Assembly: GCF_001194135.2 (NCBI RefSeq)
Contig: NC_068985.1
Location: forward strand, 4,627,498 to 4,688,924
Direction: 5' to 3'
DNA: 61,427 bases
From: Octopus bimaculoides
Lineage: Eukaryota
Shown here: piece after piece, positions 5,586 through 61,427 of the stretch
Position numbering within the stretch: position 1 is the first letter of the stretch
Layout: every line of letters begins with the position of its first letter
Notes under the pieces: model-generated
Databases searched by the model: none
Told to the model about the DNA's origin: nothing
The model's input: only the letters and a program-made list of their open reading frames with translations
Program-made: the position numbers and the translations under genes

Positions 5586-5618
<33 letters not shown>

Positions 5619-5977: not shown

Positions 5978-6025
5978 ATCGAAAAATACCTTAGGAAAGA
6001 GAACCCAGTTTTGAAATTTCCCCAA

Positions 6026-6068: not shown

Positions 6069-6203
6069 AACAATAAACAAGATGAGGACAAATATCCGTC
6101 AAATGTAAATAATGTACATAATTCCTCATCTCTTCAATACAGAACTGTGAAATCTTGTTTTAATTTGAAAGCAGCCAAAAAATATTGAGAGGTAACAACT
6201 CAC

Positions 6204-16500: not shown

Positions 16501-18712
16501 TTAAGGGCGTTACTTAGATAACATTTATAGGCTGGGTATAGAATACGATAGTTTTTCAATACTAGAAACGACTAAATTGTTGAGTTCCTTTAAATACCGT
16601 GAAAAGTCAAAACAAAAAATCACGTGAAAACGGCAATTAATGACTGACTTAATGTTTTATTTATTGCATTGTTTTAATTAAGATATTAACTAAAACAATG
16701 CAGTCTGGTCCTGTAATGTCTATATAAAACTCTGTCATAGTGAACAGGCCAGGTATTAACTGTTAATAAGCAATTTAAAAAATATATTTCATTCCTTCAA
16801 CCATTATTTCTGATATTTTAAACGGAATAGGTCGTTTCCTTTCAATTTTAATTCTGTTCCTCGTCCTCATTGTTTCTGAGATGTCTTTTTATAGAAGTCG
16901 TGAAAGTTAAGTATGAGATCTTTCTGTGTCGCTCACCCAAATTTCCCTCCAAATTATATACCTTACAGCAGCGTTTCTCAACCCTTTTTTCATCTGTGGA
17001 CCCCTTTCATTCATATTTTACTCAAATGAACCCTCATAGATATTCTGTTTAAAAAATCCTGTTATATTTTCATAATTGAATATAATTAGGAACTCCGCCG
17101 AGGTCGACTTTGCCTTTCATCCTTTCTGGGTCGATTAAATAAATACCAGTTACGCACTGGAGTCAATATAATCGACTTAATCCCTTTGTCCCCTCTATGT
17201 TTAGCACCCTGTGGGCGATAAAGAAATAAATATTTCTAGGAACTGTATTTCAAAAAAATTGTTCAAATATTTGGCGCAGAAGCAATTTATGGCTCTTAAA
17301 TTTTAAGAAACAGAAAATCTTAAATGAATCCCCAAGGTTCTATAGCCTTAAAAAGGGTTGGGCACATTCAAATAATATAGTCTGGATACACTATGCCTAA
17401 AAACAAACCAGGATGGCCACTGTTGGAATGACTTTTATCATCTGTCTGCTCTATTAGGATTGACGAGGGATTTAATAAGTCGAGAGATTCAGTGTCTTGA
17501 AAAGAAGTCAAATTTAATTAATTTGAATCTTCATATTGTCGATTAAACCATTATTTGTTCCAGATTTTTTATTTGTTTTGCTCTGCTCCCTAAATTCCTC
17601 TTGGACTTGTTTTGAGATCTGATAGAATCTATCCCTTTCCAGATCGGGAACGTTGCAGATTTCTTTCAGAAAATAAAGACAGCAGAATGAGAGAGGAAAA
17701 AAAAGTGAGGAATGAACTTCAGCACAAGACTCGTACTTTACTTATTGGCCTCGGCGATATTTGAACTCAAAGTGCAAAGAATCAGAGCAAATCGCGCAAA
17801 AACAAAAAGAAGCAAACAATCCGCTAACGACTTCGTTAATTGGACGCTTTTCAATGAATTGAGTTCTGCTCTGGAAATCCAAAGTGATCTGCTTATTTAA
17901 AGCAAAATATTAAATTAAAGCAATTGTTTCGTAATGAACGCATACTTTCTCATAAAGATTACTCGACTTAATTTAGGTAAAACAATTTATTTTCAATAGT
18001 AAATAAAAAAGAAAAGAACCTGGAAGTGGAAAGTAGGGATGTTTGACATCACGACGAACAGTAAACGGTGTAAGGTGAATATAGTCCCGCCATTAACCAC
18101 ATCGAATTCAGTCGACGGTAAATTATAATTGTGTTTTGATTAGAACGGTACACTTATTATTAATATTATTATTATTGACAATTACACGATAACCAAATTT
18201 TAAAAGTGTAACTATATACATTAGGGTTTCGATTCTTTTTAATTTCTATCGTGTACTAAGTTTTTTCATAGTGAAATGAGCGACGAATAGAGTTTTGAAT
18301 GATATAAACTTTAACTATTAAGATGAGAGAAAAATAAAAACACTTTACTTTTCGTAATGCATTAGGTTTATTTGGAAGACAAGAAAACTACAACGAAATG
18401 CTTTGGGTATTTCTGAAGTAACTTCCACGTAACAACTGTTTAGGGCCATCTCTCCCAGCGATTTTCTTTCCTCATAATTTTCTCAATACTTGTTTCTAAT
18501 TTAGGCACAAGGTCAGCAGTTTTTAAACATAGTGGGGTTACTGGGTTGCATTGACCTCAGTATTTAACTGGTATTTTATTTTATCGACTTGCATTACGAT
18601 GAAAGGCAAAGCTGGCTCCTGTGGGATTTGAACTGAGAACCCAGTGTACTCCATCCGTCAAATAAAGGATTGGGTTTGAAATTCCCCCAGAACGACTGAT
18701 GAAAGCTGAGGC

Positions 18713-26768: not shown

Positions 26769-27042
26769 TCAAATGTCTACTTCCATCTCGTTTCCTGCTT
26801 CTGCTACTGCATCTCTTAATATTTTATCTATTTTTGCTACTTCTGCTGCTTCTGCTGCTGCTGCTACTTTTGCTGCTTTTTCTGCTTCTTCTGCTGCTTT
26901 TCTGTCTTCCTTGTTATATATATTTGTGTAAAAATCTCGAAGATAGAAGTGCATTTTCCCAACAGGGCATCTCTCGTCCATGCGATCTTGAAAAGTATAC
27001 CTCAGCTCTTTATCCATATATTCTGGCTTGAAAGGTCGGTCT
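26769..27042 (-). CDS. Gene 2 terminal coding exon (DRPFKPEYMDKELRYTFQDRMDERCPVGKMHFYLRDFY...KAAEEAEKAAK...EMEVDI*)
   Basis: CATTTCAG acceptor at 27043; phase 2 matches the previous exon. TGA ends at 26769, with ATTAAA about 30 nt downstream as a possible poly(A) signal. Confidence 0.75.
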
Positions 27043-30262: not shown

Positions 30263-30351
30263 CCTCTCAAGGCTTTTCTAAGGTTAACCAGCCAATCATA
30301 TTTAAACATTCCACCGTCAAAGAGGACACCGTTTTTATAAAGTATCAGATC
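30263..30351 (-). CDS. Gene 2 exon, 89 nt (DLILYKNGVLFDGGMFKYDWLVNLRKALR); first half of a SEP-like domain
   Basis: TTTTTGCAG acceptor and GG|GTATGT donor. LxLYKNG...DxG...Y...L...RG resembles the recalled SEP domains of p47 (LKLWKSGFSLDNG) and UBXN11 (LKLYRNG). Confidence 0.8.
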
Positions 30352-32906
30352 CTGCAAAAATAATTTTAAAAATGGAAGAAAGTAATTCAGAATTTAAAGA
30401 TTAGTTGCAAAATTACAAGAAATTTTTAGTTCTTTTTATAGGATTGAACTGTGCAAAGACTAAATGGATGGAAAGGTCAAACTTGAAGGAACAAAATTTA
30501 TAAAAACATAATGTATATGTGTATATACATATATGTGTGTGCATGTGTCATCATCATCTTTAATGCCCGACACCCATGCTGGCATGGGTTGGATGGTTTG
30601 ACTGAGGACTGGCACATTGGGGACCTGCACCAGACTTCAATCTGATTTGGCATGGTGTTCCACAGCTGGATTCCCCCCCTTTTAACACCAACCACTCCTA
30701 GAGTGTAATGGGTGCTTTTATGTGCCACCGGCATGGTTGCCATTTGCGTGACACCAGTATCTTCCACAACTGTAATTATATACATATTTTTACAAGCTTC
30801 AGTCATTTGACTGTGGCCATGCTGGAGCACCACCTTAAAGGGTTTTTTTAGTAGCAGCAATTGATCCCAGGACTTATTCTTTGTAAGCCTAGCACTTATT
30901 CTATCGGTCTCTTTTGCTCAACTGCTATGTTACAGGGACGTAAACACACCAACACTGGTGGTCAAGCAATGGTAAGGAGTCAATAATAGACACAAAGACA
31001 CGCACATAAATATATATGGGCTCCTTTCAGTTTCCGTCTACCAAATTCACTCAAAGCTTTGGCTGGCCAGAGGGTATAGCAGAAGACACTTGTCCAAGGC
31101 GCCACACTGTGGGAATGGTACCTGAAATATGCTGCTGGGAAGCAAGCTTCTTACCACACAGCCATGCCTGTATATGTGTATATACATATATATATATATA
31201 CACATATATATTTATTTATTTATTTATTGCCCACAGGGAGCTAAACACAGAGGGGACAAACAAGGACAGACAAAAAGATTAAGTCGATTATATCGACTCC
31301 AGTGCGTACTTATTTAATTGACCCCAAAATGATGAAAGGCAAAATCAACCTCAGCAGAATTTGAACTCGGAACATAATGGCAGACAAAATAGCGCTAAGC
31401 ATTTCACCCGGTGTTCTAATAATTCTGCCAGCTCGCATATTTATATATATATATATATAAACATCTTTACCCCTGGTAATTCCCGGGGGTAAAGATGTTC
31501 TATTGAAATGCCTTATTACTCTGATATAAGAAAGCAGTTTTATTATAACTGCTACAAAAGGTGTATTTTCCGTCATGAAAAAGTACAAAAAACTGTCAGC
31601 TGGAGGAGGGAGAGATTGTTGGAAGTTGGAGAAAGAGGTTTTCGGAGATTGGCGAGAAAGATTGTCGCAGGTTGGTGAGAGGCAAAGACATTATTCTGAT
31701 TAGCAAAGGCATCTGGGTAATGTATAACTGCTGTCATTCACAGAAAAACTATTGTTTTACCATGAGAAAAGTGCTGTTGAAGTGTCAAGTGAAATTTGGC
31801 AATCGAGGATCAAATCCACACTATGCCTGCATGAAGCCACTACAAATACATTGTGGAATAAAAAACTTATCTACTGTCATGGAAAAAGTGTAACTGTAAA
31901 AATGCAGAATTATTGGAGCAATGGGCATTAAAAAAGTATGTATCTATAGAAATGTATGAATGAAGTCTTTAAGGTTTAAGATTCAAATTAAGGAAGTGCA
32001 ATAATAATGTTTAGCAGTTCAAAACTGTGAGTAGTGAAATGCAGAACTGGGTTGGCTGATCGTGAGAATCAAATATTGATCGCTTCGCTAAAATCTGCAG
32101 GTGGTATAGGTTGTTTAAGTAAAATATTAGTAATATGTAGTGATTCCAATCTGATCTGGCAAGGTTTCTACAGCTGTATGCCCTTCCTAACACCAACCAC
32201 TCCAAGAATGTAGTGGGTATTTTTTACATGCCATGACTATGGTCTCACTTGGCTTGGCAGGTCAACGCAAGCATGGTATATCACCAATATACTGAATATT
32301 GTAAGGCAGCAAGCAGACAGAATTGTTATTGAGTCAGGCAACATGCTTTAGCAGCATTTCATCTATCTTTATGCTCTGAGTCCAAATTCTGCTGAGGTTG
32401 ACCTCTGCTTTCTGTCCTTTCAGGATTGACAAAATAAGTACCAGTTGAGTACTGGGGTTGATGTAATTGATTTACCCCGCTCTCCTTTGAAAGTGTTAGC
32501 CTTGTGCCAAAGTTTGAAACCGATATACTGAACAGCATACTCAATTGTGAGCATGGTGAGTTTTTAAAAGATTTACAAAAAAAAAAAAAAAGTTATGGTT
32601 TGACCCATGCCAACAAGGAAAGCAGACAGTAAGTGATGGTGATGATATAGCTTTAATTATTAAAGTTGGAATTAGTTGTAATTAATAAAAACCGTACATT
32701 TTTAAAATCATAGCATACACAACCATGATATAAGATATGTAACCAATTTAGTATCTATATGAACAGGGTTAATTAACAGCATGAGTTAAGTCGATTCCAT
32801 CACAGATTATTAAAGAAATGATATGACTTATACAGTTCTACGAAATGACTTTAATTACAGTGTACTTTTTTAAAAATAGAAATGAACAAAAAAAAATAGT
32901 ACAAAC

Positions 32907-32967
32907 CAAATCAACAGGAACACATTCAATTCCTAAGTGATTTTCAACCAATTCATCTGTTCTTGTT
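32907..32967 (-). CDS. Gene 2 exon, 61 nt (TRTDELVENHLGIECVPVDL)
   Basis: TTTTTTCATTCCAG acceptor and TTG|GTTTGT donor. Phase 2 to 0. Confidence 0.75.
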
Positions 32968-35847: not shown

Positions 35848-35960
35848 TCATGTCTTCCTTCAATTAATTCAGTTGTTACATTATTTTTGCCCTTCAGAAG
35901 AGTCACGTCATTCTTTTTGGTATCATTACGTGGAATATCAGCAACGATATTCTCAATTTC
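35848..35960 (-). CDS. Gene 2 exon, 113 nt (EIENIVADIPRNDTKKNDVTLLKGKNNVTTELIEGRH)
   Basis: TTTTTTCCAG acceptor and GA|GTAAGT donor. Phase 0 to 2, no stops. Confidence 0.8.
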
Positions 35961-38092: not shown

Positions 38093-38138
38093 CTTGATTA
38101 ATAAATCTACTTGCAGGAAATACTTATCCAGTTTAAAC
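38093..38138 (-). CDS. Gene 2 exon, 46 nt (FKLDKYFLQVDLLIK)
   Basis: TTTTGTTTTACAG acceptor and AAG|GTTTGT donor. Phase 2 to 0. Confidence 0.75.
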
Positions 38139-43558: not shown

Positions 43559-43602
43559 TCTTGATGCCTTGCCCTGATGGCTGCAAGTTTTTCCATTGTA
43601 GG
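43559..43602 (-). CDS. Gene 2 exon, 44 nt (PTMEKLAAIRARHQ)
   Basis: CTTTCTTTTTCAG acceptor and GA|GTATGT donor. Phase 0 to 2. Confidence 0.75.
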
Positions 43603-45442
43603 CTGAAAAAGAAAGATGAAACAATATTTAAAATTTAAAAATAAAAAGACAAAATATTCACTTTTAAACAAAATTCAATTCAACTCATCAAAAATTTTAA
43701 AGGTTAACATTTATTTCAAAATTCATATTTAATAAAATTTCAGCAAATTTACATTTTTCATTCTTTTGATTTTCTTTCTTTTTTTTTTTTGTTTAGAATC
43801 CAGGTGTGGAAGCAAAAGCTGGAACAAAGGCCTTGGAATTAACTAAGGAAAGACTAAAGTTTCAGCTAACAGCAAAGCAGATAGGATTCTACTCCCTTCA
43901 GGTAAATGGTTCTGCTTGATATGTAGGAAAACTGTAGGTAGGAATTCCATACATTGTACCCAGTGAAAAGTTATGGACACACAAGAGATGCAGCGGAATC
44001 AAAGGATAGTTAATGGAAAAAGTAGTATTAGTAAGAGGAAAATGCACAGGAGCAACAAACACTAAGGATACACTGGAAATAAATTTTCTGAAACACCTTG
44101 GAGGCTCCCTAGAAGAAGTAGATAGTTTCTGTTACCTAACTGACCTAATTAGTAGTGGCGGAGGATATCAGTGATTCTCAACTATTTTTTTGCCCTTGGA
44201 TGCCTTTGGTTCCTATTTTACTCACTGGACCTCCATAGCCATTTGATATATATATATATATATATCGTCATGGCACCTGTGCCCAGCATCGCCTCCCTGG
44301 CACTTGTGCTAGATAGCATATGTAAAGACATTTGAGCGAGATCGTTGCCAGTGCTGCCGAACTGGCTCCTGTGCAGGTGGCATGTAAAAAACACCATTTC
44401 GAGCGTGGTCGTTGCCAGTACCGCCTGACTGGCCTTCGTGCCGGTGGCATGTAAAAGCACCCACTACACTCTCAGAGTGGTTGGTGTTAGGAAGGGCATC
44501 CAGCTGTAGAAACTCTGCCAAATCAGATTGGAGCCTGGTGTAGCCATCTGGTTTCACCAGTCCTCAGTCAAATCGTCCAACCCATGCCAGCATGGAAAGC
44601 GGATGTTAAACGACGATGATGATAATGATGATGATATATAAATATCTCACTGTATTTTTATTATTAAATATTATCAGGAACTGTCACCATCATCATTTAA
44701 CGAATGTTATCCATAGTGGTAAGATGCCAGTCTGATTTGGCATGGGTTCTACAGCTAGATTCCTTTCCTAAAGCCAACCACTTCGAAAGTGTAACAGGTG
44801 CTTTTTAAGCCAGAAGCATGTAAAATAGCAATTTATTGCACATAAATTTTAACAAGAAAATCTGATATGGACTGCCAAGGGCCATATGGACTCTGGTTGA
44901 GATCCACCGGTTAATATATTAATTAAAAGAAAAATTTGTAAGTAAACCAAAAGAAGAAGAGAGGTAGTGGTCATTACTTTTGCAAGCCGTGTTGAAATAA
45001 TGCAAACATAAACATCTGCCTGTTTATGTCTGGAGAAAATCACAGGCAGGGAAGGAAGAGGAGGCCTGATTGAATGCTTGTGATACAAGAAAAAAAAAAA
45101 AAAAAACCCTCTGCTAAAGACACTCTAGGATTGCAGGTGTTAAATTAAGATGAAGTTAAGCCTACTACTAATATAACAATTATCAATTTACTATAGAAGT
45201 TAGCCAAGATTTTAGGAAAAATTAATTACCATAGAGTATTTGAATCAAAATTAAACTAAAATTTAGACCAAAGTAGTTAAGTCTGATCCTAGATATTTAT
45301 AGAACCTAGTATAGCTTAATTGAGACAAAATCAAACATGAATTTATTAAACAGACCCAAAGCAATTTGTCTTCTTCAGCTCTATAAACGTGTATTAGCGT
45401 CCCATAGTCCAAACCAGTCCAAATGCTAAGATAGCGAATCAC

Positions 45443-45461
45443 CTGACGGATATCTAATTTT
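45443..45461 (-). CDS. Gene 2 microexon, 19 nt (KLDIRQ)
   Basis: TTCTTTTATTTATTTCAG acceptor and CAG|GTGATT donor. Supplies the phase 2 to 0 link needed between 47462 and 43602. Confidence 0.55.
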
Positions 45462-47461
45462 CTGAAATAAATAAAAGAATTATAAAAATATAATAAAACA
45501 AATTCATTAAGAAAATACTTTTTAACAAGTTATAAAATATTCTTCAACTATCTGTTTAGTATAAAATATTCCAAATGCTTTCTCTTTAACAAGAAGAAAA
45601 GGCAAACCACAACCATAAACCTCAACACCATACCTGTAAACTCCAGCCTCACAGGAATATTATCTGGTCAAAATATTAGTCAATGTTTGCTGCTCTTGAG
45701 TCGGCAAATATATAGAGAAGGGGTACACTAGGCTCATCCTATATCTCTGTATAGATTATCTAAGATTAGATGTTACAAATCTGAGATTCTCTTCAGTATT
45801 GTAAAACAGTTAAAATGTTTCAATGCTAAAAGAGCATTGAAACATTTTATTAAAATAATGTGAGACTGGTAAAATGTAAAAAGACGATAATACAAGGCAG
45901 CTTACAAGTTAAACACATGATTTGGAAGATTATAGAGTAGAGATAATACAGAAGCTGGATAATCATTTTTCATGTAAGAAAGGAAAATCTTGATGTATTT
46001 ATCAAACTCTAAATAGAAAAAATAATAATTTCTTAATCATCACAAAGTCATGAAACTGGAAAGAAGGGTGCAATCAATTTAATAGATCCTAATATTTCCT
46101 AAGTGTTTATCATATGACATCTGGAGGTATGAAAAGCAAAATTAACTCTGCTAAGATATTAACACAGATCTTACAGATCTGAGTTCATATCTGAGATAAC
46201 TAAATAAATCTTACCTTATCTGACCATAGGAGCCCCACCCAAACATAGAAAATGGTTTATGCACAATGATTATAAACATTTTAGGGGTGTGCTTATATAA
46301 TAGTCAAGGGTGAGGCAAATACAAATATAAACATCAAAACAGACTCACTCAAAGACTCAACCATATTGTATTCCGAGTGGTTCCATGCCCTCAAATGTAA
46401 TCTTCAGAAAGATTTCAAACACTATTCCTTTCATAAACACTTTCATCAAATTTACTAACAGTAAGGGATTGGGCATGGCTGTGGAGTAAGAGGTTTGCTT
46501 CTTCCCAACAACGTGGTTCCAAGTTCAGTCCCACTGCATGGTACCTTGGGTAAGTATCTTCTACTGAAGTCCTGGGTCAACCAAAGCCTTGTGAGTAAAT
46601 TTGGTAGATGGAAACTGAAAGAAGCTTGTCATGTATGTGTATGTGAGTGTAGGTGTGTGTGTGTGTTTGTGTGTGTATGTGCATGTGTGTATGTGTATGC
46701 ACATCTCTATGTATGGTAGCACCTCACCACTGCTTGACAACTGGTGTTGGTGTGTTTACATCCCCATAACTTAGCAGTTTGGCAAAAGAGACTGATAGAA
46801 TAAGGCTTAAGAAAAAATTAAGTACTGGGGTTTCATTCATTTGACTAAAAATTCTTCAAATGGATGCCCCAGCATGGCCACAGTCTAATGACTGAAACAA
46901 GTAAAAGTTAAAGGATAAAAGATATCCTGAAGTACAAGCAAGACTGTGTGGTAAGAAATTAGTTTCTAACCACATGGCTCCAGGGTTTCTTGGACAGGTG
47001 TCTTCTTTTGTAGCCGCACTCCCAACCAAAACCTTGTCAGTCGACTGGGAAGACGGAAACTGAAAAAAGCCCACTGTGTATATACATGTGTGTGTGTGTT
47101 ACCGTCTCCTTAACTTGACTTCATGTGATAGATTGTAAACGAGTGTCACTGTTATGCAAGTGGTGTCCTTTGTTTGCTATCTGCCATGGAAACATGTCTG
47201 GTTATGGAGAAATATTATCTTGAATGGGAACAAGCGAAGACTGGCAATCGGAAGGGCATCAGGCTGTAAAAAATATGCCTCAACAAATTCTGTCCAATCC
47301 ATGACAACATGGAAAAATAGATGTTAGAATGAAGCTGATGATGGTAATGATGATGATGATTACAATGATAATTCCTATATTATTATCCCATTTATACATC
47401 AGTCTTCTCATTACTTAAAAGCAAAAGTCAAATTTAAACAAGATGTGATAATATTACTTAC

Positions 47462-47526
47462 TCAAATTTTTGTCTTTCCATGATGCTAGGGAGCTTTTCT
47501 ACGCCCCTCTCAAATTCTTCATATTC
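47462..47526 (-). CDS. Gene 2 exon B2, 65 nt (EYEEFERGVEKLPSIMERQKF)
   Basis: CATTTCTAG acceptor and GA|GTAAGT donor. Only the phase-0 frame is open. Confidence 0.75.
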
Positions 47527-47784
47527 CTAGAAATGTTTACAAAGAAGGCATTTATTGTGACTTTATAACAAAAGTAATGGATTTCACACCTATAATTCCA
47601 TTTTAATTTGCACATTGACTGTTCAATGAAACTGGACATTTGTTATTTTTATCTTTTAATCTAAGACTCATGAAAAGGGGAGAGGAAAATATTCTCAAGT
47701 GCAAATCTTGTCTCAGGTATGGCTGTGTAATAAGAAATTTGCTTCCAAACCACATGGTTCTGGGTTCAGTTCCTCTTTGTGACA

Positions 47785-49305
47785 CCTCCAGCCCATCAGG
47801 AATCACCGCTAAGATGTTTAAAATATCTGGCAGTGTGGGAAATTGTTTAGTCACCTGTATTGTAAATAACATGGTTCATGAAGGAGTCATACCCAATGAT
47901 TGGTGTAGCAGTACCATACTAAACTGTTACAAACGTAAAGGTGATGCTTTAGATAGAAATAATTACAGAGGTATCAAATTGTTGGATCAGGTGATGAAAG
48001 TTACAGAGAGACTTAGTCTAGATGAGATGCAGTTTGGTTTTGTACGAGGTAGAAGCACCACTGATGCTATATTTCTGGTAAGGTAACCTGTCCAAAGAAA
48101 AATCTCTGTAGCTGGCGTTTGTTGACATAGAGAAAGCTTTTGACAGGGTCCCCTGATCCCTTATCTGGTGTCAATGCGGAAACTAGGGATAGACAAGTCG
48201 TTGATGAGAGCCGCAGAAGCCTTGTACAGGGACACTATCAGCAAGGTGAGGGTGGGCAATGAGTACAGCAAAGAATTCAGCGTACAAGTAGGGGTTCACT
48301 AAGGATCAGTACTCCCCTCTTGTTCATCATAGTCATCCGGGCAATAACAGAGGAATTCAAGACACAAAGGTGCAGCAACATCAGAGGAAGGTTAACAGGG
48401 AGACTAATTTTGTATGTGAAAGGTGCACAGGTACAATAAATGCTAAAAATGCACAGAAAATAGACTCCATCAACTGCTTCCATTATCTAGGAGGCCAAGT
48501 TAGTAGTGGAGGTGGATGTTCCAAGAGCGTAGCTGTGAGAATAAGATTAGGCTGGGTAAAGTTCAGAGAGCTCCTACTCCTGCTGGCAACAAAGGGCCTC
48601 TCTCTCAGAGTGAAATGGAGATCGTTTGATGCCTGTGTGCAAACAGCTATGCTGCATGGCAGTGAAACATGGGCTGTGATAGCTGAGGACATGCGTAGGG
48701 TTGGCAGAAATGAAGCCAGTACACTTTGCTGGATGTGCAATGCCAGTGTGCATGTTCGACAGAGTGTAAGCATCTTGAGAGGAAACTGGCATAAGAGGAA
48801 CTAGATGTGGTGTGCACAGAGAGACAACTGCATTGGTCATGTGATGTATATGTATAAGGGTAGCTGTGTAAAGAAGTACTGATCTCTAAATGTGGAGAGA
48901 ACCTGCGGTAGAGGAAGACAGGGGACAAGGTGCTGAGGCATGATCTTCAAACTCTGAGCTTCACTAGTGACTGAAGCCTATGGCAATGTGCTGTGCTTGA
49001 GAGGACTCATCAAGCCATGTGAAATTGTAGTTGTCATCAATGCTGGTGTCATGTAACTGGCATGCAAAAAGCACCTTTTGAGTGTTGGGCCTCACAGGGG
49101 CAAAGTGGCTGACTGATGCTGGTGGCATGTGAAAAGTACCTAGTACACTCTCAGAGTGGTTGGCATTAGGAAGGGCATCCAGCCGTAGAAACAATGCCAA
49201 ATCACACTGGGGTCTAGTGCAGCTTTTCAGCTTGTCAGCCCTGGTCAAACTGTCAAACCCATGCCAGCATGGACAATGGATGTTAGATGATGATGATGAT
49301 GATAT
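47785..49305 (+). mobile_element. RTE-like LINE, degraded RT with 3' tail
   Basis: IPNDWCSSTILNCYKRKGDALDRNNYRGIKLL, QFGFVRGRSTTDAIF, MLHGSETWAV. Frameshifted. Confidence 0.85.
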
Positions 49306-49324
49306 ACATATATATATATAGTTT

Positions 49325-49801
49325 TAGGGAAAATAACCAAGTTTCAAGAACTCATCGAGGAAAATCCACTATCACATATAGAAAAATTAATAATCAGGAA
49401 TTACGGAAAAATTTGGATAAGTACTGTTTTTTACTTTGCTAAAGATTTTCTACTATTTGAAAATATGTATTCTTGTTTTTTATATTATTCATTTGGTTCT
49501 TTATAGATTATTTTTAATAGATAACTTATTTAACACTAAATTATTTAGAAGTTATAGTTTCGTTTCAACATAATATTAGAACTTCGATTTGAATAGTGTT
49601 GATATATTTTCGATTATCTTTGATTAATAATTAATCTTTATAGTTTATAATATCGTTAAAGATTTTTTAAAATTAAAACTTTGTATATATATATAAAGTT
49701 TAATCTTTTATTCTTAATAATTTTTTCTTTCCTAATTTTTCCATTCATAATTTTTTCATTCATATTTTTATTATTACGTTTGTAGAAATAAATAATCTTG
49801 T
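49325..49801 (-). mobile_element. Very AT-rich remnant, possibly a Penelope-like GIY-YIG tail
   Basis: Broken frames give SKIYQH...IIYKEPNE..K..E.IF. Abuts (TA)n and a gap. Confidence 0.3.
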
Positions 49802-50999
49802 NNNNNNNNNNNNNNNNNNNNNNNNNNNNNNNNNNNNNNNNNNNNNNNNNNNNNNNNNNNNNNNNNNNNNNNNNNNNNNNNNNNNNNNNNNNNNNNNNNN
49901 NNNNNNNNNNNNNNNNNNNNNNNNNNNNNNNNNNNNNNNNNNNNNNNNNNNNNNNNNNNNNNNNNNNNNNNNNNNNNNNNNNNNNNNNNNNNNNNNNNNN
50001 NNNNNNNNNNNNNNNNNNNNNNNNNNNNNNNNNNNNNNNNNNNNNNNNNNNNNNNNNNNNNNNNNNNNNNNNNNNNNNNNNNNNNNNNNNNNNNNNNNNN
50101 NNNNNNNNNNNNNNNNNNNNNNNNNNNNNNNNNNNNNNNNNNNNNNNNNNNNNNNNNNNNNNNNNNNNNNNNNNNNNNNNNNNNNNNNNNNNNNNNNNNN
50201 NNNNNNNNNNNNNNNNNNNNNNNNNNNNNNNNNNNNNNNNNNNNNNNNNNNNNNNNNNNNNNNNNNNNNNNNNNNNNNNNNNNNNNNNNNNNNNNNNNNN
50301 NNNNNNNNNNNNNNNNNNNNNNNNNNNNNNNNNNNNNNNNNNNNNNNNNNNNNNNNNNNNNNNNNNNNNNNNNNNNNNNNNNNNNNNNNNNNNNNNNNNN
50401 NNNNNNNNNNNNNNNNNNNNNNNNNNNNNNNNNNNNNNNNNNNNNNNNNNNNNNNNNNNNNNNNATATATGTATATACATACATACATACAAATATATAC
50501 ACACACACACACATACAAATATACACATGTGTCTTTGTCTGTGATTGTGCCCCACCACTGTTTGACAACCAGTGTTGGTGTGTTTACATCCCTGTAACTT
50601 AGCAGTTTGGCAAAAGAGACCAATAGAACAAGTAAGTACTGAGGTTGATTCACTCAACTAAAGCTTTTTAAAGGAGGTGCCCCAGAGACATTGCAAAGCA
50701 TTCCATCTGGTGTCTTTTTATTTTTGGCTTGTTTCAGTTATAGGAGTGTGGCCATTCTGGAGCACTGCCTTGGAGGGTTTAATCAAACAAATTGACCCCA
50801 GAACTTCAGCCACCAATAGAGTGACCAGGACTTGGGCTGGTGATTCATTCACTGAGCATGAATAGATGAAAATATACTGGTATATGAGGCCAGAGCATAG
50901 AGAGCTAGAACAAATACTGCAAGACATTTTAGACAACACTCTAATAACCAGTCAATTTGCTATCTTATACAATATATAAATATATAAAATTCAACTAAC

Positions 51000-51033
51000 C
51001 TCGTTGTATGCAAAATAACTTTTCGCTAGTTCT
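51000..51033 (-). CDS. Gene 2 exon A2, 34 nt (ELAKSYFAYNE)
   Basis: TTTCCTTTGCAG acceptor and GAG|GTTAGT donor. Phase 2 to 0. Confidence 0.75.
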
Positions 51034-51274
51034 CTGCAAAGGAAAATAAAAATAATAATAATAAAAATAATAATAATGGTTTCAAATTTTGCTGCAAGGG
51101 CAGGAACTTTGGGATAGGGGATGAATCAATTACATTGACCCCAGTGTTCAACTGGTATTTATTCTATTGACCCTGAAAGAATGAAAGGTCAAGTCAACTT
51201 TGGTGGAATTTGAACACAGAATGCAGTGACAGGCAAAATACCGCTAAGCATTTCGTCCGACATGCTAAGTAGTA

Positions 51275-51410
51275 ATAATAATAATAATAATAAGGAACTG
51301 AAAATTATTCAAGAATGATCCCTGGCTTCCCATCCCTGCAGGAAGTGCAAAAGATTGTCTTAACTGCTACATCACATGTATTGGGAAGAGCATTGTCACT
51401 GTGAATTTTC
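51275..51410 (+). mobile_element. R4/Dong-like 3' end fragment after (TAA)n
   Basis: ...MIPGFPSLQEVQKIVLTATSHVLGRALSL* directly after a TAA run. Confidence 0.55.
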
Positions 51411-52447
51411 TTTCCCTTTTTTCCCCTTTATTTTTTTGTTTACTTTTTGTTTTCCTTTTTCTCTTCATCTTTCTTCCTCTTTCTCTCTTTCACATGGCTT
51501 TGTAAATGAACAATCCAGTGTATCTATTTTAATGGCCTACCAATGTATACAGTGATTTCCTCTGCTCTAGGTGTTAGGAAGACACTTGGCAAGAAATGGA
51601 AACAAAATTGAAAGAAGACGATAATGAAAATAATAATAATAATTTCTTTATTGACCACAAGGGACAAGTGCGATTGAACACAAAAATTGAGTGAACAATA
51701 AAATAGCAATGATAAATAACAAGAAAATTCTAACAACTAAATTCTACAATAAGAAGGAGTTTCTTACAGGAACCTCACAAATCCTGATTGTCCTAACCAC
51801 CAGGTGCACATGTTACTGTGGATCTGTGTAGTTCTGTAGAGTGTTAGAGTAATGAAGAATGAGGCCAGACTGGAGTTTATATTCTGGTGGTCCTTGTGGT
51901 GTAAATGGACACCATACAGATTAAAGAACCAAAGCTACATGGAAATCATAACCTTCATACAAGAGGATCACACCCACCATAGGTCTGACATGTAGAATAA
52001 CACTTGGTACACTCTATTGCTCATCTCCATTTTGTGCAGTGTTTCACATGTCACATTGGCACAGCAATTTTTCTTCTTCTTAAACAAATATTGTTATCAA
52101 ACAACCACCACAGATAATCTTGAAGCAGATGGAGTACATAAGTCTTAGTTGTAGTTGCTGATGTTTTGTCCCAAGCACAGCTCTAATCCAGCACACCTAT
52201 AATCAAAAATGTTGTAGCCATGATGAATTTGTCGCTTTTTGAAACAGTACATTTGGCATTACATTATGCAATGTGTCCTTCCTGCTTTAAAATGATAGGA
52301 TATGATTTCAATGAAATTTAGCTCTTTTTTCTGGCAGCTGGAGCAACCTATAGAGACTTCATTTTGGACATCTGGGTTGAATTTATTCTTCCTGTAATGC
52401 AGTAAGTTATGAATATGTAGAGATTCTTTCATTGCCAAAGATGATAG

Positions 52448-52872
52448 TGTAGTGACGCTTAAATAGCAGACGACTGTTATTGTTCACTTCCCGGAAAGCT
52501 TATCCCCGCATGTGCAGGGACTAGTTCCGGAAGGAACACAGGAAGAGTCTCATGCGCATGCGTAGAGTTCGACATCCAAAACGTTCCCGCTCTTTTCATT
52601 CTCTTGCTTCACTGATCTTCGTTGCGTCGAGACGTCCCACAGAACTCTCTCTCGACTCAGCACCAGAGCAACTCAAATAACCACAAAAACTGCATTGAGG
52701 GCGGCTCAGAAACCGAAGGCGATGAGTTACCGAATTCCCTCCAAGCGTGAGCCGAATTCCACTGTAAATAAATATTGTTGTGTTGTTCAGAATCTGCATT
52801 CCGTTGTTTCTTCTAGAAATTTAATGTACGGAAGCAGGTATACACCTAATGGTGTATAACCACTTTCCTACA
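52448..52872 (+). mobile_element. Solo LTR (Ty3/Gypsy-like), 425 bp
   Basis: TGTAG...CTACA termini, ATAG TSD at 52444-52447 and 52873-52876, AATAAA at 52767-52772, CpG-rich body. Confidence 0.85.
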
Positions 52873-52899
52873 ATAGTATCCGTCTTTTGTCCTTTCAAT

Positions 52900-54360
52900 C
52901 TTATCTCATAGACAAACACTTTTGCAAAACTAGCTCACCTTTACAAGTAAAAGAAGGTGATGGTGTGATCTTCAATATGGACTCACATTATAGACAGATT
53001 GTCCTAAGCAGCATAACAGTTGTTGAATGAGCATTACTGACATCCAGAGTAGCAGGCATTTCAAGAAGGCTCAAACATTCAACACATGTATGCAGAATGG
53101 TTTTATTTCTCTCTCTATCTTATTGTAATTATTATGGCCAGGTTCCAACCCAAGCTGCAGCAACAAAGTCCATCCTGCACACTTGTCAGTCCATCATCGT
53201 TGCCTCTAGGTCCTGGATATGTTTCAAGCCGGTATCTGCAATCAAGTTGTCAATGTAAGTGTGTGATGACGTTTTCCTCTTCTTACATCATGATGAAGTG
53301 GGTTCCACACACTAATTTAGATGCTTCCAGTTCAGCATGTTGCGTGCAGTGACCAGACAGTTGCAGCTGTCTTTGCTTGATCTCCTTGCAAACTTTTAGC
53401 AAGTCTCCATAAAGGCATTTCTTTGTCATACGTTGCTGCCATTTCAGACTTAGGGCCATTTGTAGTATCCTTGTGTAGCACCCATTTAGCCAATTTGACA
53501 ATTTCTTTGTCAGCATCCATGTTTCACTGCAATATAAAAGCACTGATTCAACAGTTGCAATGAACAGCTTGATTTTGGCAGACCCTCTTTAGTTTGCAAC
53601 AGGCTGTCCATGCTTGTGCCTTCCTGATCCTGATGTCTGCATCTTGGATAATCCAAGTTGATGGTACTTCTCCGTTTGTAGAGTATATCTCAACCAGCCA
53701 TTGTCCCACCTTGATAGCACAGGGGAGCCTAGGATTTTTGGAAATTGTTCACAGTCCCCAAGAGAGAAGTTTTCTGGGATACAGCTGCTAGTTCACTCTC
53801 ATTAGTACTCAGAGCTTTTTCAAGAATGTCTTTCCTACTACTATTCCTCTATAAATAACATGGAAATTTCACGAAGTGCATAGCCCAACTAGGAGAGGTC
53901 TATGGGTGATGGGCTACATTCCAGATGCCAGATGCCCATAGGTCTCCATTTGATCCAGAACAGCAGTTCTGATAAACAATTGAGCTGTGTGAAGACATAC
54001 TTCACAGAAAGCGCCAGACCATCTCTGTAGGTGCTGCAAGATCCAGTCACAGTATACTGAAACCTTAGCATGGAAGGTGATGGCAGCAGATCGACTGCCT
54101 GACCTGTAGAAAAACATCCCAAGAAACAAAGGAATGTCATGTGAGAACTGTGCAGTAAGGTATTTTGCTGCATGTCATTTACTAGGGAACCAGTATTAGA
54201 GAACGAACGAAAGAATATTTAAAATTACAGTTCTATAAATTCCTGAAATTCTCATTCAAGTCAATCAACTGAGTTAGTTCTGTGTTGCTCTGTACATTGG
54301 TCATTCCTTGGATGGTTCCAGCAACATATCAGTTTTTCTATAAAAAGAGGTTAGTAACCC
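52900..54360 (-). mobile_element. RTE-X-like LINE remnant
   Basis: LLYCSETWMLTKKLSNWLNGCYTRILQMAL...LYGDL.KV...I.QRQLQLSGHC. Confidence 0.65.
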
Positions 54361-54589
54361 TTTTCTTCAACTTTTAACCACCACTGCTGCTACCACCACC
54401 TGTCTGTTCCAGTCTGTTTTGGCTTGGTTTCTACAGCTGGACACCCCTCCTAATGCCAATGACTCCACAGAGTGTACCAGGTGCCTTTTATGTGTCACCA
54501 GCACTGGTCATGCCTATGATTTCATTTAGTATGATGTAACTTCTCAAGCACAGCAAATTGCCAAAAGTCACAATCATTTGACACTGTCT

Positions 54590-56135
54590 CTGTGAAACTC
54601 AACAACCAAAGATCATATTTCACCACCTCATCCCATGTCTTCCTGGGTCTACCTCTTCCACAGTTAGTGAACTGTGCTTATTTATGCATCTGTCCTCATT
54701 CATATGCAACACATAGCAATACCAGTGCAGTCTTCTCTCTTGCACACTACATCTGATGCCTCCTATACCCAATTTTTCTCTCAAGACACTCACACTCTGA
54801 CATTATCCATTCAGCAGAGCATGCTAGTTTCATTTCTTTCAAGCCTTTGCAAATCCTCTGCAATCACAGCCCGTTTCACTGCCATGTAGCATGGCTGTTC
54901 ACACACAGGCATCATACAATCTGCCATTCACTCTGAGGGGAGAGACCCTTTGTTATCAACAAAGGCAGAAGTTCTCTCAACTTCACCCAACCCATTCTTA
55001 TTCTAGCAGCTATGCTCTCAGAGCATCCTCCTCCTCCACTGCTGACTTGGTTATCGAGGTAACAGAAGCTATCTACTACTTCTAAATACATCCTCGGAAA
55101 GTTAATGAAGTCAATTCTTTGTACATTCCTAGTGTTTATTGTGTCTACACATCTGCAACACACAGAGACTACTTTCTCTATTAACCTTCCTCCGATACAG
55201 CTACATTTCTTATGTATCCATGCTTGCACTGGGTACATGTTATGGAGCTTCTACCTACACTTTTTCTGCATATTGAGCAAGGCCATCTCCTTGAAGGGCT
55301 TGTGATTTGTCTGTTCAATTTACTAAGACTTTGGTCTTAGCAAAATTACCTCTAAGGCCCTTATCTTCCAGATCTGGCTTCCACAGCTGGAATTTTTCTC
55401 TAGTTCTGATAGTAATTCAACTATAAGAACAAGGTCATTAGCATAGAAGAGCTCCCAAGGGCAGCCCATCTTAAGTTCTTCTGTTATGGCCTGGAGGACT
55501 ATAATGATCAAGAAGTGAGTTGAGAACTGATCCCTGGTGAACTCCTACCTGTACACTGAATTCATAGCTAAGGACGGTGGACATTAAATGATGATGATGA
55601 CTCATTGCCAAATTTCCTGTTACTGGCAGCATCCTTGTACGACTCACCAACCACTCATCAATTCCTAGCTTCCACATTAACCATCAGATAAGGGAGCAGG
55701 GAACACTGTCAAAGTCTTTCTCCATGTCAACAAGAGTCAGGTACAGAATTTTACCAGAAATATAGCATCAGTAGTGCTCCTCCCTGGCACAAAACCAAAC
55801 TGTATCTCATTTAGACTCACTTCCGAGTTAGTTTAGCTATGATATTCTCTGTAACTTACATTGCCTGGTCTAACAATTTGAAAGTTCTGAAATTATTTCT
55901 GTCTAAGGCATCACCGTTACCATTGTAGCAGTTGATTGTCATGCTGTTACAGCAACTATTGAGTATGACTCCCCCATGGACAACCTGATTAACTAGACAG
56001 GTGACTAGACCATTTCCCACTTTGCCAGATATATTAAGCATCTCAGTGGTGACACCTGATGAGCCAGGGGCTTTCCTTGTCTTCATATCCTTCATAGCTT
56101 TATCTACCAAGCTGCTATCTATTTGGATAGCTGCT
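54590..56135 (-). mobile_element. RTE-like LINE, degraded RT
   Basis: KAPGSSGVTTEML, QVGVHQGSVL, ELFYANDLVL, EVVDSFCYL. Same family as 47.8-49.3 kb; further fragments at about 20100-20290, 22330-22800, 41420-41770, 42910-43390 and 43800-44165. Confidence 0.8.
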
Positions 56136-56585
56136 CTCATTTTTATCAATTTTAATAGTGACATTTCCAAGCCTTCAAATTCATAAAACCCAGCTTTCAA
56201 ATTAAAATTGGTGGAGTTCCTCCAACATTTCATGTAAATTTGAATTTCAGTATAATTTAAAACATTATTCAATTCAATTTTTTCTTTTTATCCCACTTGA
56301 CCATTTCAATCTGTGAAAATATCTTATTTTAACATTTTAAATTTCAAATGCAAAGAAACTGTGAAGTAAAATTGAGCTTGGACTGAAAATTTCTTCCTTT
56401 ATCTCTGTATGCACTTGGGCCTTATATCTTTAATCTTGTAGTTAAATATAAATATTAAAAAAAATGTAATAAAAACTAGATGAACAGGATTCTGCATATC
56501 TGCTTATGTCATCATATTCATGGATTGTAGTCTTGCATCGAATTACAAATAAAATTCAAATTAAAGATGTCATAAAATTACTTAC

Positions 56586-56650
56586 GTGATCTGTGAACTT
56601 CGAATAATTTCTGGCAAGCTTTGAATTTTGCTCTCCAAGAAGCAATATTC
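56586..56650 (-). CDS. Gene 2 exon B1, 65 nt (EYCFLESKIQSLPEIIRSSQI)
   Basis: CATTTCTAG acceptor and CAC|GTAAGT donor. Paralogous to 47462-47526, whose only open frame fixes the phase as 0 to 2. Confidence 0.75.
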
Positions 56651-59600
56651 CTAGAAATGTTCACAAATAAAGAATTTGTAGTGACAGCCTCATAAAATTG
56701 AGAACATTATATCTATAGTTTTTAGCTGGCATATGACTCGTCTATGAAACTAAACATTATCTGACTTAGAGAAACACTTCTGTTGTTTTGTTTCTTGATG
56801 TCCACAGTAGCATCAAGTGTGGCATACTTTTATTCTTTTACTTGTTTCAGTCATCTGACTGTGGCCATGCTGAAGCACCGCCTTAAAGCGATTTTTAGTA
56901 AAAGAAATCGACCCCAGGACTTATTGGTCTCTTTTCCTGAACTGCTAAGTTATGGGGACATAGACACACCAGCATCGGTTATCAAGCAATGGCCGGGCAA
57001 AAAACACAGGCATAGTGCTGCCTGACTGGTCCCGTGCTAGTGGCATGTAAAAAGCACCACTTGAGCATGGTTATTGCCAGTGCTGCCTGACTGGCTCCTG
57101 TGCCAGTGGCAAGTAAAAAGCACCATTCAAGTGTGGTCGATGCCAGTACCATTTGACTGACCCTCGTGCCAGTGGCACATAAAAAGCACCCACTACACTC
57201 TCAGAGTGGTTTGTGTTAGGAAGGGCATCCAGCTGTAGAAACCTTGCCAGATCAGATTGGAGCCTGGTACAGCCATCTGACTTGCCAGTCCTCAGTCAAA
57301 CTGTCCAACCCATGCCAGTATGGAAAAGGGACGTTAAATGACGATGACGACAACGATTATGATGATGATGATGATAATAATATATATATATATATACACA
57401 TATATCTGTAATATAATATGTGACAGTCATTCGGTTGCCATAATAAAACTCTGAGTTTTGGATGTTGGGACAGAAATCTGCTCCGGCATCTCGTCAGTTA
57501 TTAAGAGAAACAAAAATGCTATGATTTTCATAGCATTTTTGCTTGTCATGCCATGCAATGGGACTGAACCCAGAACCATGTGATTGAGAAGCAAGCATCT
57601 TACCACACAACCACGCCTGCGCCTATGATGTATGATTCAAAACAAGACTGGGAAGGAATATAAAAATAATTCCAGAACATATTATTTCAAACAACTCTAT
57701 GGCTTACTAAAACTGACACAATGATTTCTAATACAGCTATGTAATCACAAACATTGTAGGTGTGACATAATCTACATATTTGTCCCTAGTATCTCACTTG
57801 TATTTATTCTATGAACCTTGGGAGGATGAAAGGCAAAAGGATGCCTGTGGCTTTGAAAGAAGACTTCGATGGGTTGTAACAAACTACTGTAAGGATATGT
57901 ATCAAGAATTGTTCTGATTTTGTTACCCACTTCCTAAAAAGGAGCCTCAGACCAGTCACTTGCTTTATTAGAAGTGACAGCAAAATCTCCTCAAAATTTC
58001 CTCGAGAATAAAAAAAAAGAATGTTGGATGTATTGAAATTTGTAGCATCTAGATTAGTGGTTTCGGTGGAAATAAGGATACAGAATGGTTACAGCTTCAA
58101 CAATACTGAGCCTAAGGTCAATATTAGAACTGACCTGGAAGTAAACAATAAACAAAACCAGAAAATTGAATACAAATCCAATACAAGAAACAAAGGCTTT
58201 CTCCTTCATTAGTTTCAATATCAAAGCTGTAGTGAGTACTGCTACCAACACATCTTCTACAACTTTACTTGTGTTATCAAGCTTCAATAAATGGAATGCT
58301 ACACTGAACTCACTGGCATTTCAATTCAGAAATTGTAAACATTAAACTAGTATATCAAAATCTTGTAGACCATCAAGTCTCTTCCTCTTAATGCTGCACC
58401 AAATTACCAATATTCAAAAGAGGTGTAGAATTCCAAGACAACGTAGGGAAGCAAAATATGTTTGGCAAATGAAATAAATCTAATCTCTAGTCCCTAACAG
58501 AGAAGGACCCTCACAGAAGGCAGCATATAATCATTCCATTTGCTTAATTATAGCAACCAAATTGTCATCAACTATCATCTTTCAAATGGCATCAGCTTAT
58601 ATGAAGTTCTTCAATTTCAGACAATGATCCAAAAGAAAGACAATACTTTTATGATTTTTTTATAAGTTTGTTAGATGAGGCAAGTTAGTTTCCATGGCAT
58701 TTTGGTAGCCCTGCCTCAGACTTGTAAGAATTTCAGTGTAGGATGTTTAACCTGAATAACTGAAGGTAAACAATAATCGGTGGAGAGGAACAGCTGATTT
58801 GGTCCAAATGCATGAAAGTGAGGGAATTCTCAGTAAAGTCACCCAGGAACCAATCTTTTAAATATTTTGGTTTAAAACAAGAGAAATCTCAGTCATGACA
58901 TCTCTAGTTAAAAGCATGCCAGAAAGAACAGGTGACTTAGATGAAACTGCACCTTATTACATAATGTGATGCCACAGGTAGGCTAATGATATTGTTTACC
59001 TTATTTCTTAAATGAATTATAAGTCTTTAGAAAAACCTTCAGAGATGACAGAATGTCGAAGGTTTTTGCAGGTTTATTGTTAACCATTTAACAGATTATC
59101 CAGTCAAATGCAATGCTTAATTATCTATATTGTTTTGAATTAATCATGCATTATCTCATATATTTGAGACCTTCAATGGTATGACAGTACATTTTTAAAA
59201 TGACATTGTAGGTTAGGTGTAAAAGGTAACAGGTCATTGGTTTTGAACATAAGACAGGTAGGATATTTGGGCTGGATATAGCCAGTTTAAATGCTATGCT
59301 AAAGGGTTAAACATGTATTTGTAGGAACTTTTACGAGCATTAGGGAATTAAAAGCATTAAATTTTATTACAAATGAGAGCACACACAACAGTCAGGTAAG
59401 AAGTTAGTTTCCAAACCAGATGGTTCTGGGCTCAGACCCAATATGTGACACATTCTACTATAGCCTGGGGCCAACCAAAGCCTTGTTAATTGTGGCATGT
59501 AGAAACTGAAAGAAGCCCATTATATACGCATGTGTATGTGTGTGTGTCTATGTCTGCGCTTGAAAAGCAGTGTTGGTGTGTTTACATCCTTGTAACTTAG

Positions 59601-61017
59601 CAGTTTGGCAAAACAGACCGATACAATGAGTAACAAAAAAATTACTCATGTGAATTCATTCAACTAAAAATTCTCCAGGGCGGTGTCCCAGCATTGTTGC
59701 AATCTAATGAGTGAAGCAAGTAAATGATAAAAGAGAAAGGTGCATTGAAGGGCTCTGCCTGCATGAAATGGAACAAAAGAGAGATAAAAACCTCTGGGGT
59801 TAAGATGCTGGTATGTTTCAGTTCATATTACTAAAGTATCTATAACATTATTTCTACAGCAACACAGACAGAAGCAAAGTAGAGAGAAATACTTTGCCTC
59901 ACCAAAGAAAAACAAATACAGACTAAATACCTGGCTGGTTTTGATCCCATGACCCAATAGTTTATTCCTACAACCATAGCATTTCTGCAGGTGTATCTAT
60001 TTCAGCAGTTTATAATTAAATAATACCAGATTTAATAACAAATTAGTTATTTTAAGAATTTTAGTAATTGTTTAGCCCCAGGCCAGTCCTGATCCAGTAG
60101 ACCTATTATCCCAAAAGAACGTTTCTTATGACTAAACCCAAAAAGGACACTTTTGCAGGACCTCCATCAATGGTAGGAAAAGGTGAGGATGAAACCATCA
60201 CTTGTTTGGTATCATCAGACCATTTATCTCAAGTGAATGCTTACTACAGAAGGAATTCCACTGAACGCATCAAAAGTACAGCTGATGGTATTAGAATGGA
60301 GTAGGGATCAAATCTAACACCAAAGAACAAGTAAAGTTTATGCAAGAGAGCTTTCTAAGAGCTTGCTGCTACCAAATTTCATACACGACATTTGGCTTGA
60401 CCCCACCAGATTAGGGGTTGAATATTGAGATTGAAGCTGGAATCACATACTTGCTAAGTAAACTTTTTAATGCATATCAATGCTTGTGCCTGCTTTGTGG
60501 GTGTGAAAGTGGATGGCTGTATTTTAAATGGAAGTGGCCATGGATGGCTGGCAAAGATATTCAATTTGAAACTATATGGTTCCTGATTCAATCCCAATGC
60601 ACAGCACCTTGGGCAAGTGTGTTCTACCACAGTAATTGTTTGACCAATTCCTTGTGAATAAAATTTGGTAGATGGAAACTGTGTAGAAGACCAGCTGTTG
60701 CATGTACATTGAAGCCTCCCTCTGTCTACAGCACAATGTTATCTAAGGAAAAGACAAAGGCCAATACAGTTTCACAGTATGGCTGTGAGAAGGGAAAGGG
60801 CAGGATGAGATATCACAAGGCATCCAATCAAGTGTTTTAACAATCCTAGACTGCTATTATTATTATTACCAAATTCAAAAAGGGAAAGGTACAATTAACT
60901 GCATTGATATTTGAACTCAGAATGTAGACAACCAAGACAAATATCGCAAAGCCTTCTACCAGATGCCTGAATCTCTCCACCAACATATTGGATTGTAAAT
61001 AAATCATATCAACTAAC

Positions 61018-61051
61018 CTCACGCTCTTTAAAGAGACTCGCTGCATATCTT
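61018..61051 (-). CDS. Gene 2 exon A1, 34 nt (RYAASLFKERE)
   Basis: TTTCTTTTGCAG acceptor and GAG|GTTAGT donor. Same length, phase (2 to 0) and donor context as exon 51000-51033. Confidence 0.7.
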
Positions 61052-61427
61052 CTGCAAAAGAAACAAACATATTTTCATCACACCATCACAATCATCATCA
61101 TTATTTCTACATCAATGCACAAACGGAACCATTACAGAACTGTTATTTTGTGTTTGTACATTTTATTATTTTAATCTAAATCTACAATACATTTGAACAG
61201 GTTCAATCTCTGATTATCACCAGGCATCATATTTGTGGATGTCTGTAGAGTATCAAACTGGAATGTATTTAGTGTACTAAGATTTCTCTGTCAGCAAAAG
61301 CAGCCATGGTGAGTGAACGTCAGTTTTAGGTATGTTTTAACTGGCTTTTTAACAAGAGCATGACTCTTGCTAATAGGTAAAGCATCTTGGTTTTCCAAAA
61401 GGAACAAATGAATAAATGATATCACAA

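Follow-up and report, generated by a model that had tools for sequence, protein, structure and literature searches.

The DNA analysed here is a 61,427-nucleotide (nt) stretch of the Octopus bimaculoides genome (positions 4,627,498 to 4,688,924 of contig NC_068985.1, assembly GCF_001194135.2; hereafter the window), which carries two pairs of very short exons on its minus strand. From our comparative analyses, we consider it likely that these exons encode the last two modules, 32 and 33, of an array of about 33 predicted helix-turn-helix modules in one very large Octopus gene. This array would have grown by unequal crossing-over, with gene conversion acting on its introns and selection preserving its exons.

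Two exon pairs and the orthologous gene of Octopus sinensis

Each pair consists of a 34-nt exon and a 65-nt exon, here called A and B and numbered by module. Reading along the minus strand, A32 lies at 61051-61018, B32 at 56650-56586, A33 at 51033-51000 and B33 at 47526-47462. These positions agree with the first-pass annotation of the window, as do the phases: each A exon is preceded by a phase-2 intron and followed by a phase-0 intron, each B exon the other way round, and each pair measures 99 nt and is phase-symmetric. Also confirmed were the GAG donors of the A exons, both of which read tttgcag/A...GAG/gttagttg (slashes mark exon borders). The splice context of the B exons is acatttctag/GAATAT.../gtaagtaat. 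The window contains exactly two matches to the pattern of the 34-nt exons, TTTGCAGA-N30-GAGGTTAGTTG, where 0.03 would be expected by chance, and none of 100 shuffled sequences reached two. Judged by eye from the exon sequences, the sole frame that is open across all four exons is the one originally proposed. In this frame, A32 encodes (x)RYAASLFKERE, B32 EYCFLESKIQSLPEIIRSSQI(T), A33 ELAKSYFAYNE and B33 EYEEFERGVEKLPSIMERQKF(E), which gives the two module peptides RYAASLFKEREEYCFLESKIQSLPEIIRSSQIT and ELAKSYFAYNEEYEEFERGVEKLPSIMERQKFE of 33 amino acids (aa) each. The peptides of modules 32 and 33 are identical at 10 of 33 residues. Aligned without gaps, they score 40 by BLOSUM62, compared with -21 +/- 12 for shuffled peptides (0 of 200,000 shuffles reached 40). 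Searches across the whole window found no third module.

A HMMER scan of 1.84 billion cluster representatives returned one real relative, XP_036358878.1 (E 1.3e-45, 13 matched stretches), which is the uncharacterized protein LOC115212235 of Octopus sinensis, with a length of 1,935 aa and a gene spanning 310 kb. The second match of this library scan, P0002, was rejected as an unrelated 51-aa repeat protein. A search with the module profile added only three more proteins, all of them short O. bimaculoides fragments (LOC106881217, LOC106881215 and A0A0L8FTR5), and a word-indexed protein search found nothing for the 66-aa two-module peptide and nothing for the terminal coding exon described below. 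Mapping of XP_036358878.1 onto the window revealed seven further exons past B33, all with GT-AG sites. Phase alternation holds across the whole chain of 11 exons, consecutive exon pairs measure 99, 99, 150, 159 and 150 nt, and the spliced product is a 309-aa C-terminus. This product is identical to residues 1379-1645 of XP_036358878.1 at 196 of 267 positions (73%, zero gaps, E 2e-139), and since the alignment is gap-free over 267 aa, it validates every splice junction. Within it, the A32 peptide is aligned to KFAEEYFKGPE of O. sinensis. The two proteins agree in the order of their last two modules, in the C-terminal region and in having an Ala/Glu/Lys-rich tail, and their modules correspond by position. 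Judged by its collinearity and its high identity over the non-repeat C-terminal region, LOC115212235 is the orthologue of the window gene. It holds both modules consecutively, which bears out the earlier proposal that the two pairs are homologous duplicated modules spliced in series.

The intron between A33 and B33 contains an assembly gap (a run of N at 49802-50464), located 535 nt downstream of A33 and 2,275 nt upstream of B33, with a TG/TA microsatellite as its upstream edge. The gap hides no coding exon and leaves the frame unaffected, because the O. sinensis protein reads uninterrupted through this junction (...KLAQSYFEYNE/EYKQFVRDIEKLPSIIERQKFE/KLNISQ..., no alignment gaps).

It is highly improbable that the pairs lie outside one gene, as separate small tandem genes or as non-coding duplicated sequence. 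In its favour are the O. bimaculoides annotation, which offers only fragments of 129-207 aa, and the first protein searches, which gave no protein containing the window's own exons. However, the fragment models begin in intronic sequence beside assembly gaps, and the 11-exon splice chain, with GT-AG sites at all exons, is gap-free against the orthologue. Further evidence against this alternative is the single open frame seen by eye and the codon pattern of B32 and B33, where identity is highest at second positions (14 of 21) and at chance level at third positions (6 of 21). The window exons appear to belong to one very large gene, of a family found only in Octopus.

The module array and its predicted fold

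XP_036358878.1 contains 33 tandem modules of 30-33 aa each, extending from residue 377 to 1437; the counterparts of the last two, 32 and 33, are encoded in the window. Most odd modules have 33 aa and follow the consensus IDKERAK.LA.KHFG...EY..F.KE...YP, and most even modules have 31-32 aa and follow the consensus FG...AKKLAE.YFKG.EGY..L..EL. An odd and an even module together form a four-exon super-repeat of ~65 aa. Module 32 is a hybrid, combining an A exon of the even type with a B exon of the odd type.

The first-pass annotation had predicted further modules past the right edge of the window. These were found in the locus of the first fragment (CM046605.1:4695974-4743618 of GCA_001194135.2; hereafter L001), which adjoins that edge: the last 58 nt of the window overlap at 100% identity, the remaining overlap being masked. 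This 45-kb extension holds 14 more exons, in keeping with the 33 modules of the O. sinensis protein. Each A exon of modules 23 and 25-30 measures 34 nt and lies between the acceptor tttcttttgcag (tttctttcacag in A29) and the donor GTTAGTT. The same donor follows all nine A exons (61010-61017 and 50992-50999 in the window, and the donors in L001); it has a T at position +3, where A or G is usual. The odd B exons (modules 23, 25, 27 and 29) are 65 nt long and lie between ttttctag and a donor of the GTAAGTAATTT type, from which two copies vary. The even B exons (modules 26, 28 and 30) measure 62, 62 and 59 nt and follow gaatatttRYag, with the donor GTAAATATTTTTA in B28 and B30 and GTAAGTAATTTTAT in B26. 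The pair type of 34 + 65 nt deduced from the window is thus one of two, the other being the 34 + 59 or 34 + 62 nt of even-numbered modules. All nine A exons have 34 nt and the nine B exons 59-65 nt, phases alternate, the order is collinear and the flanks align, as is characteristic of an array of tandem exon duplications. Because intron phase changes from 2 to 0 and back along the array, gain or loss of an exon pair, or of a whole four-exon super-repeat, can leave the frame intact.

Between B30 and A32, the readable sequence yielded no exons of module 31. This module is probably located inside the gap at L001 41292-43300, because the downstream flank of B25 recurs right after that gap, which places B31 there. 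Likewise, part of module 24 was not found in the readable DNA of L001 and is likely to lie in the gap at L001 5665-7698, which is the expected place of its A exon. On either side of the latter gap, L001 5401-5664 and 7699-8321 are 98% and 96% identical to the introns flanking A32 (L001 44395-44658 and window 58162-58785), and modules 24, 30 and 32 seem to have a recently exchanged block in common.

An AlphaFold2 model of four modules, for which eight non-overlapping four-module segments served as the input alignment, contains eight helices, two per module (mean predicted local distance difference test score, pLDDT, 81.6). On the basis of this model, the modules are predicted to be helix-turn-helix units. 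Helix 1 is interrupted by the phase-2 intron, and the turn before helix 2 is the site of the phase-0 intron; the 34-nt exon provides the second half of helix 1 and the turn, and the 59-65-nt exon provides helix 2 together with the linker and the beginning of the following helix 1. When the model was compared with the PDB using Foldseek, TPR domains topped the list without reaching significance (E 0.8-5, template modelling score ~0.2). No Pfam TPR family matched the orthologue or the eight four-module segments at E <= 1, the module profile found nothing significant among PDB sequences, and no Pfam family matched the two-module peptide, the terminal exon or the array modules. The 33-residue period is ankyrin-like (99-nt pairs in the window, 30-33 aa in the array). 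That the repeat is nevertheless not ankyrin, as noted earlier, is supported by the lack of any ANK match when the window peptide, the full-length orthologue and the eight segments were scanned against Pfam. The modules resemble TPR and ankyrin repeats in their ~33-aa period, with two antiparallel helices predicted per unit, and differ from them in their conserved positions (LA..YF.G...EY..F......P), which are unlike those of the TPR and ANK consensus.

The N-terminus of XP_036358878.1, which is encoded outside the window, contains UBA-like domains that exceed the curated cut-offs of the Pfam families UBA_4 (33.8 bits, cut-off 21.8) and UBA_8 (29.3 bits, cut-off 26). A derivation of the modules from UBA-like domains was considered and rejected, as hhalign gave a probability of 0.2% for the module profile against four N-terminal segments. 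Our best guess is that the protein serves as a long helical scaffold whose hydrophobic core is conserved and whose surfaces vary.

Age of the modules and proposed homogenisation of the introns

Each O. bimaculoides module is closest to the O. sinensis module of the same number (identity 0.52-0.77), compared with 0.33-0.52 to any other O. sinensis module and 0.31-0.50 to any O. bimaculoides paralogue. The differences between the exons therefore predate the split of the two species. The first-pass annotation had interpreted the two pairs as one duplication caught while its intron homology survives, and this interpretation is not supported: synonymous sites between modules 32 and 33 are saturated (synonymous divergence, dS, ~1.9), each module has its positional orthologue, and flank similarity is array-wide, being far stronger in other module pairs (80-100% over ~1 kb) than in 32/33. 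We regard it as improbable that the window pairs go back to one internal duplication, fairly recent and involving a single exon pair, whose intron similarity has yet to decay, possibly with alternative or mutually exclusive use of the two pairs. Equal exon lengths and phases and alignable flanks would be expected from such an event, and phase symmetry permits in-frame skipping. Yet the saturated dS points to old age, the pairs are 2 of 33 modules with an O. sinensis orthologue for each, and both stand in series in the 1,935-aa model.

Two O. bimaculoides gene models, P0004 (an old one) and P0005, cover modules 16-23 upstream of L001; they share the exons of modules 16-18 and then diverge, one running on to B18 and A19 and P0004 going from A18 straight to B22 in frame. 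This join could hint at in-frame skipping, in this case of four modules, but may only reflect gaps in the first assembly, and it is either such a skipping event or a first-assembly artefact. The first 11 residues of both models, MESICSVFQLQ, are encoded at repeated intronic sites ~146 nt downstream of B exons (L001 13639-13671 and 43450-43482, with partial copies at 5169-5192 and 16150-16173), and the starts of these models are probably annotation artefacts inside homogenised introns.

The intron flanks of the window pairs are alignable, as had been claimed, and the intron strings quoted for them are the reverse complements of the minus-strand flanks. When tested, the flanks around B32 (56444-56758) matched those around B33 (47313-47640) over ~330 nt with an E-value of 1e-18, a match that is unique in the window. 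The A flanks matched weakly (60905-61071 against 50878-51054, E 0.004-0.012). An interspersed repeat of ~150 nt at 51072-51228, just upstream of A33, interrupts the homology of the A flanks; it has many copies in both orientations, among them those near 3921-4080, 32375-32526, 17091-17184, 18485-18646 and 31277-31383. A32 and A33 are 44% identical in the exon, 47% in the 100 nt upstream, 62% in the 100 nt downstream and 74-79% in the flanking 30 nt. For B32 and B33, identity is 46% in the exon, 65-70% in the flanking 100 nt and 80-86% in the flanking 30 nt. The same pattern was found over nine copies of each class, with a mean pairwise identity of 0.52 in the A exons against 0.66 in the 50 nt upstream and 0.73 in the 50 nt downstream, and of 0.48 in the B exons against 0.76 and 0.69, respectively.

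Modules of the same class have blocks of 0.3-1.6 kb at 80-98% identity in common. Within such blocks, the paralogous introns are 80-100% identical and the exons only 54-79%. The 1.3-kb block around A32 (59954-61270, minus strand) is 90% identical to that around A30 (L001 34090-35391), with 65% identity in the exon inside it; this pair reaches 99-100% at positions +101 to +300 and 85% within 100 nt of the exon. B26 and B28 are 93-96% identical upstream and 58% in the exon, B28 and B30 93-98% upstream and 71% in the exon, and B23 and B29 85-96% upstream, 86-91% in the first 200 nt downstream and 58% in the exon. The dip in identity coincides with the exon; in the two strongest cases, binomial tests against the flank rate gave P = 8e-12 and P = 2e-7. 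Between window 60718-60917 and L001 34440-34639, ~200 nt of downstream intron are 99-100% identical, although the A32 and A30 exons differ at 12 of 34 positions; this near-identity is due either to very recent conversion or to an assembly artefact.

We propose that the array grew by unequal crossing-over between homologous introns. The identity pattern is most simply read as continuing gene conversion or unequal exchange among the repeated introns, which would keep them homogeneous. Selection would remove those events that erase module-specific exon sequence, so that the exons stay distinct. The intron flanks would then look better conserved than the exons because conversion homogenises the introns while selection keeps the exons apart. 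Two discordances show that conversion at times extends into the exons in the O. bimaculoides lineage: the 3' parts of A32 and A30 both encode FKERE, where O. sinensis has FKGPE and FKEYE, respectively, and B25 resembles B23 and not its own O. sinensis orthologue.

Purifying selection on intronic splicing signals, needed for very short exons in long introns, is a serious but not the favoured explanation of the flank similarity. Conservation peaks in the first 20-50 nt (0.66-0.79), the unusual donor GTTAGTT is found in 9 of 9 A exons and the acceptor tttcttttgcag in 8 of 9, and the old pair 32/33 is alignable over only ~100 nt on each side. Such a constraint, however, cannot account for kilobase blocks at 80-100% identity, and RNAalifold found no conserved RNA structure in the flanks around the B exons. 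It is less probable still that the main cause of the excess exon divergence is positive selection that diversified the module surfaces following recent duplications, and not homogenisation of the introns. Five close module pairs have a non-synonymous divergence (dN) above dS (omega 1.2-1.7), and the differences cluster in the exon cores while the core positions LA..YF, EY..F and P are fixed. On the other hand, in close pairs dN (0.38-0.67) and dS (0.26-0.54) are both far above the divergence of the introns (0.02-0.15), and the positional orthologues indicate exon differences older than the species split next to some intron stretches that are 99-100% identical. Compared with both explanations, we prefer homogenisation of the introns combined with exon-preserving selection, with diversifying selection on the exons and constrained splicing signals within the first 50-100 nt as probable additional factors.

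Several observations weigh against the array and mechanism proposed here. The NG86 dN/dS ratio of 1.2-1.7 for close pairs means that positive selection on the exons may be part of the cause. As the assembly is rich in gaps, some of the near-identity of paralogous introns could have arisen during assembly. Serial splicing was judged from the O. sinensis protein, which is a computed RefSeq model, and exon lengths and intron homogenisation were shown in O. bimaculoides only. The O. bimaculoides annotation breaks the array into small separate loci. Regarding the structure, the predicted template modelling score of the four-module model is only 0.52, and the model of the window's 277-aa C-terminus, with a pLDDT of 36.8, is unusable.

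The introns after B32 (54482-56064) and after A33 (47791-49062) hold the same element of ~1.3 kb in opposite orientation at 67-70% identity. Its long open reading frames have no Pfam match.

The C-terminal region, a neighbouring gene and comparison with known systems

The seven exons downstream of B33, all on the minus strand, complete the C-terminal coding region of the window gene. According to the alignment with the orthologue, B33 is followed by exons of 106 nt (45356-45461, encoding KLDIRQVIRYLSIWTGLDYGTLIHVYRAEEDKLLW), 44 nt (43559-43602, PTMEKLAAIRARHQ(E)), 46 nt (38093-38138, FKLDKYFLQVDLLIK), 113 nt (35848-35960, EIENIVADIPRNDTKKNDVTLLKGKNNVTTELIEGRH(E)) and 61 nt (32907-32967, TRTDELVENHLGIECVPVDL). 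The next exon, of 89 nt (30263-30351, DLILYKNGVLFDGGMFKYDWLVNLRKALR(G)), is 97% identical to the orthologue over 30 aa in a tblastn search. The terminal coding exon with the stop codon (26769-27042) encodes DRPFKPEYMDKELRY...EVDI and ends in a short Ala/Glu/Lys-rich tail. A direct join of B33 to this terminal exon, which would be phase-compatible, was rejected, as six exons lie between them according to the orthologue mapping. The tail comprises ~50 aa in O. bimaculoides (window 26769-26912, minus strand) compared with ~290 aa in the O. sinensis model (residues 1646-1935), and both finish in EMEVD. The C-terminal region has no significant PDB match by sequence and no detectable relatives. A SEP domain (p47-like) was considered for it and rejected, with no Pfam SEP match on the orthologue and no PDB sequence match.

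Farther downstream, the minus strand carries a second gene (window 433-7846). Its first coding exon begins with MDMFNKLKTVV at ~7830, and further exons are located at 6203-6361, 3503-3733, 1667-1930 and 433-771. The joined peptides match a protein kinase domain (Pfam Pkinase, E 1e-17), and the gene presumably resembles that of the SCY1-like pseudokinase SCYL2.

The results call for a correction of the O. bimaculoides annotation, which presents one gene of ~300 kb as several small 'uncharacterized' fragments and apparently leaves out its 3' end. The repeat protein family is undescribed: it has no Pfam model, the locus identifiers of this gene were mentioned in no paper in the literature searched, and so far it was found only in Octopus. 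The gene is a natural case in which dozens of 34-nt exons have to be recognised reliably across kilobase-long introns, and in which gene conversion and selection are partitioned between the introns and exons of a single gene. As a tentative view, we suggest an Octopus-restricted giant protein with an undescribed helical repeat, whose ~66 very short exons might be actively kept different while the introns are continually homogenised, and which might present an array of diversified binding surfaces, with in-frame skipping of modules possibly varying its length.

The mechanism by which such an array is built, tandem duplication of phase-symmetric exon sets, is already well known. Dscam contains a cluster of mutually exclusive duplicated exons. 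It resembles the present array in its tandem paralogous exons of equal length and phase, with variable sequence and similar flanks. In Dscam-like clusters one paralogous exon is used per transcript, whereas the orthologue of the window gene, a computed model, uses all modules in series, and no conserved pairing structure was found here. In the primate L/M opsin genes, gene conversion homogenises the introns and selection keeps the exons distinct (PMC3213168). The likeness lies in a divergence between paralogues that is higher in exons than in introns, so that the exons look old and the introns young (PMC3213168). The opsins, however, are two whole genes, whereas the present case concerns dozens of exon units within one gene, seen in a single assembly without population data. 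The array can further be compared with the repeat proteins nebulin and titin, which are built by tandem exon duplication with super-repeats. Short symmetric exon sets per module, a super-repeat and a very long gene are common to all of them. Unlike in nebulin and titin, each module of the Octopus array is split over two very short exons with a boundary inside helix 1, and the array was found only in Octopus.

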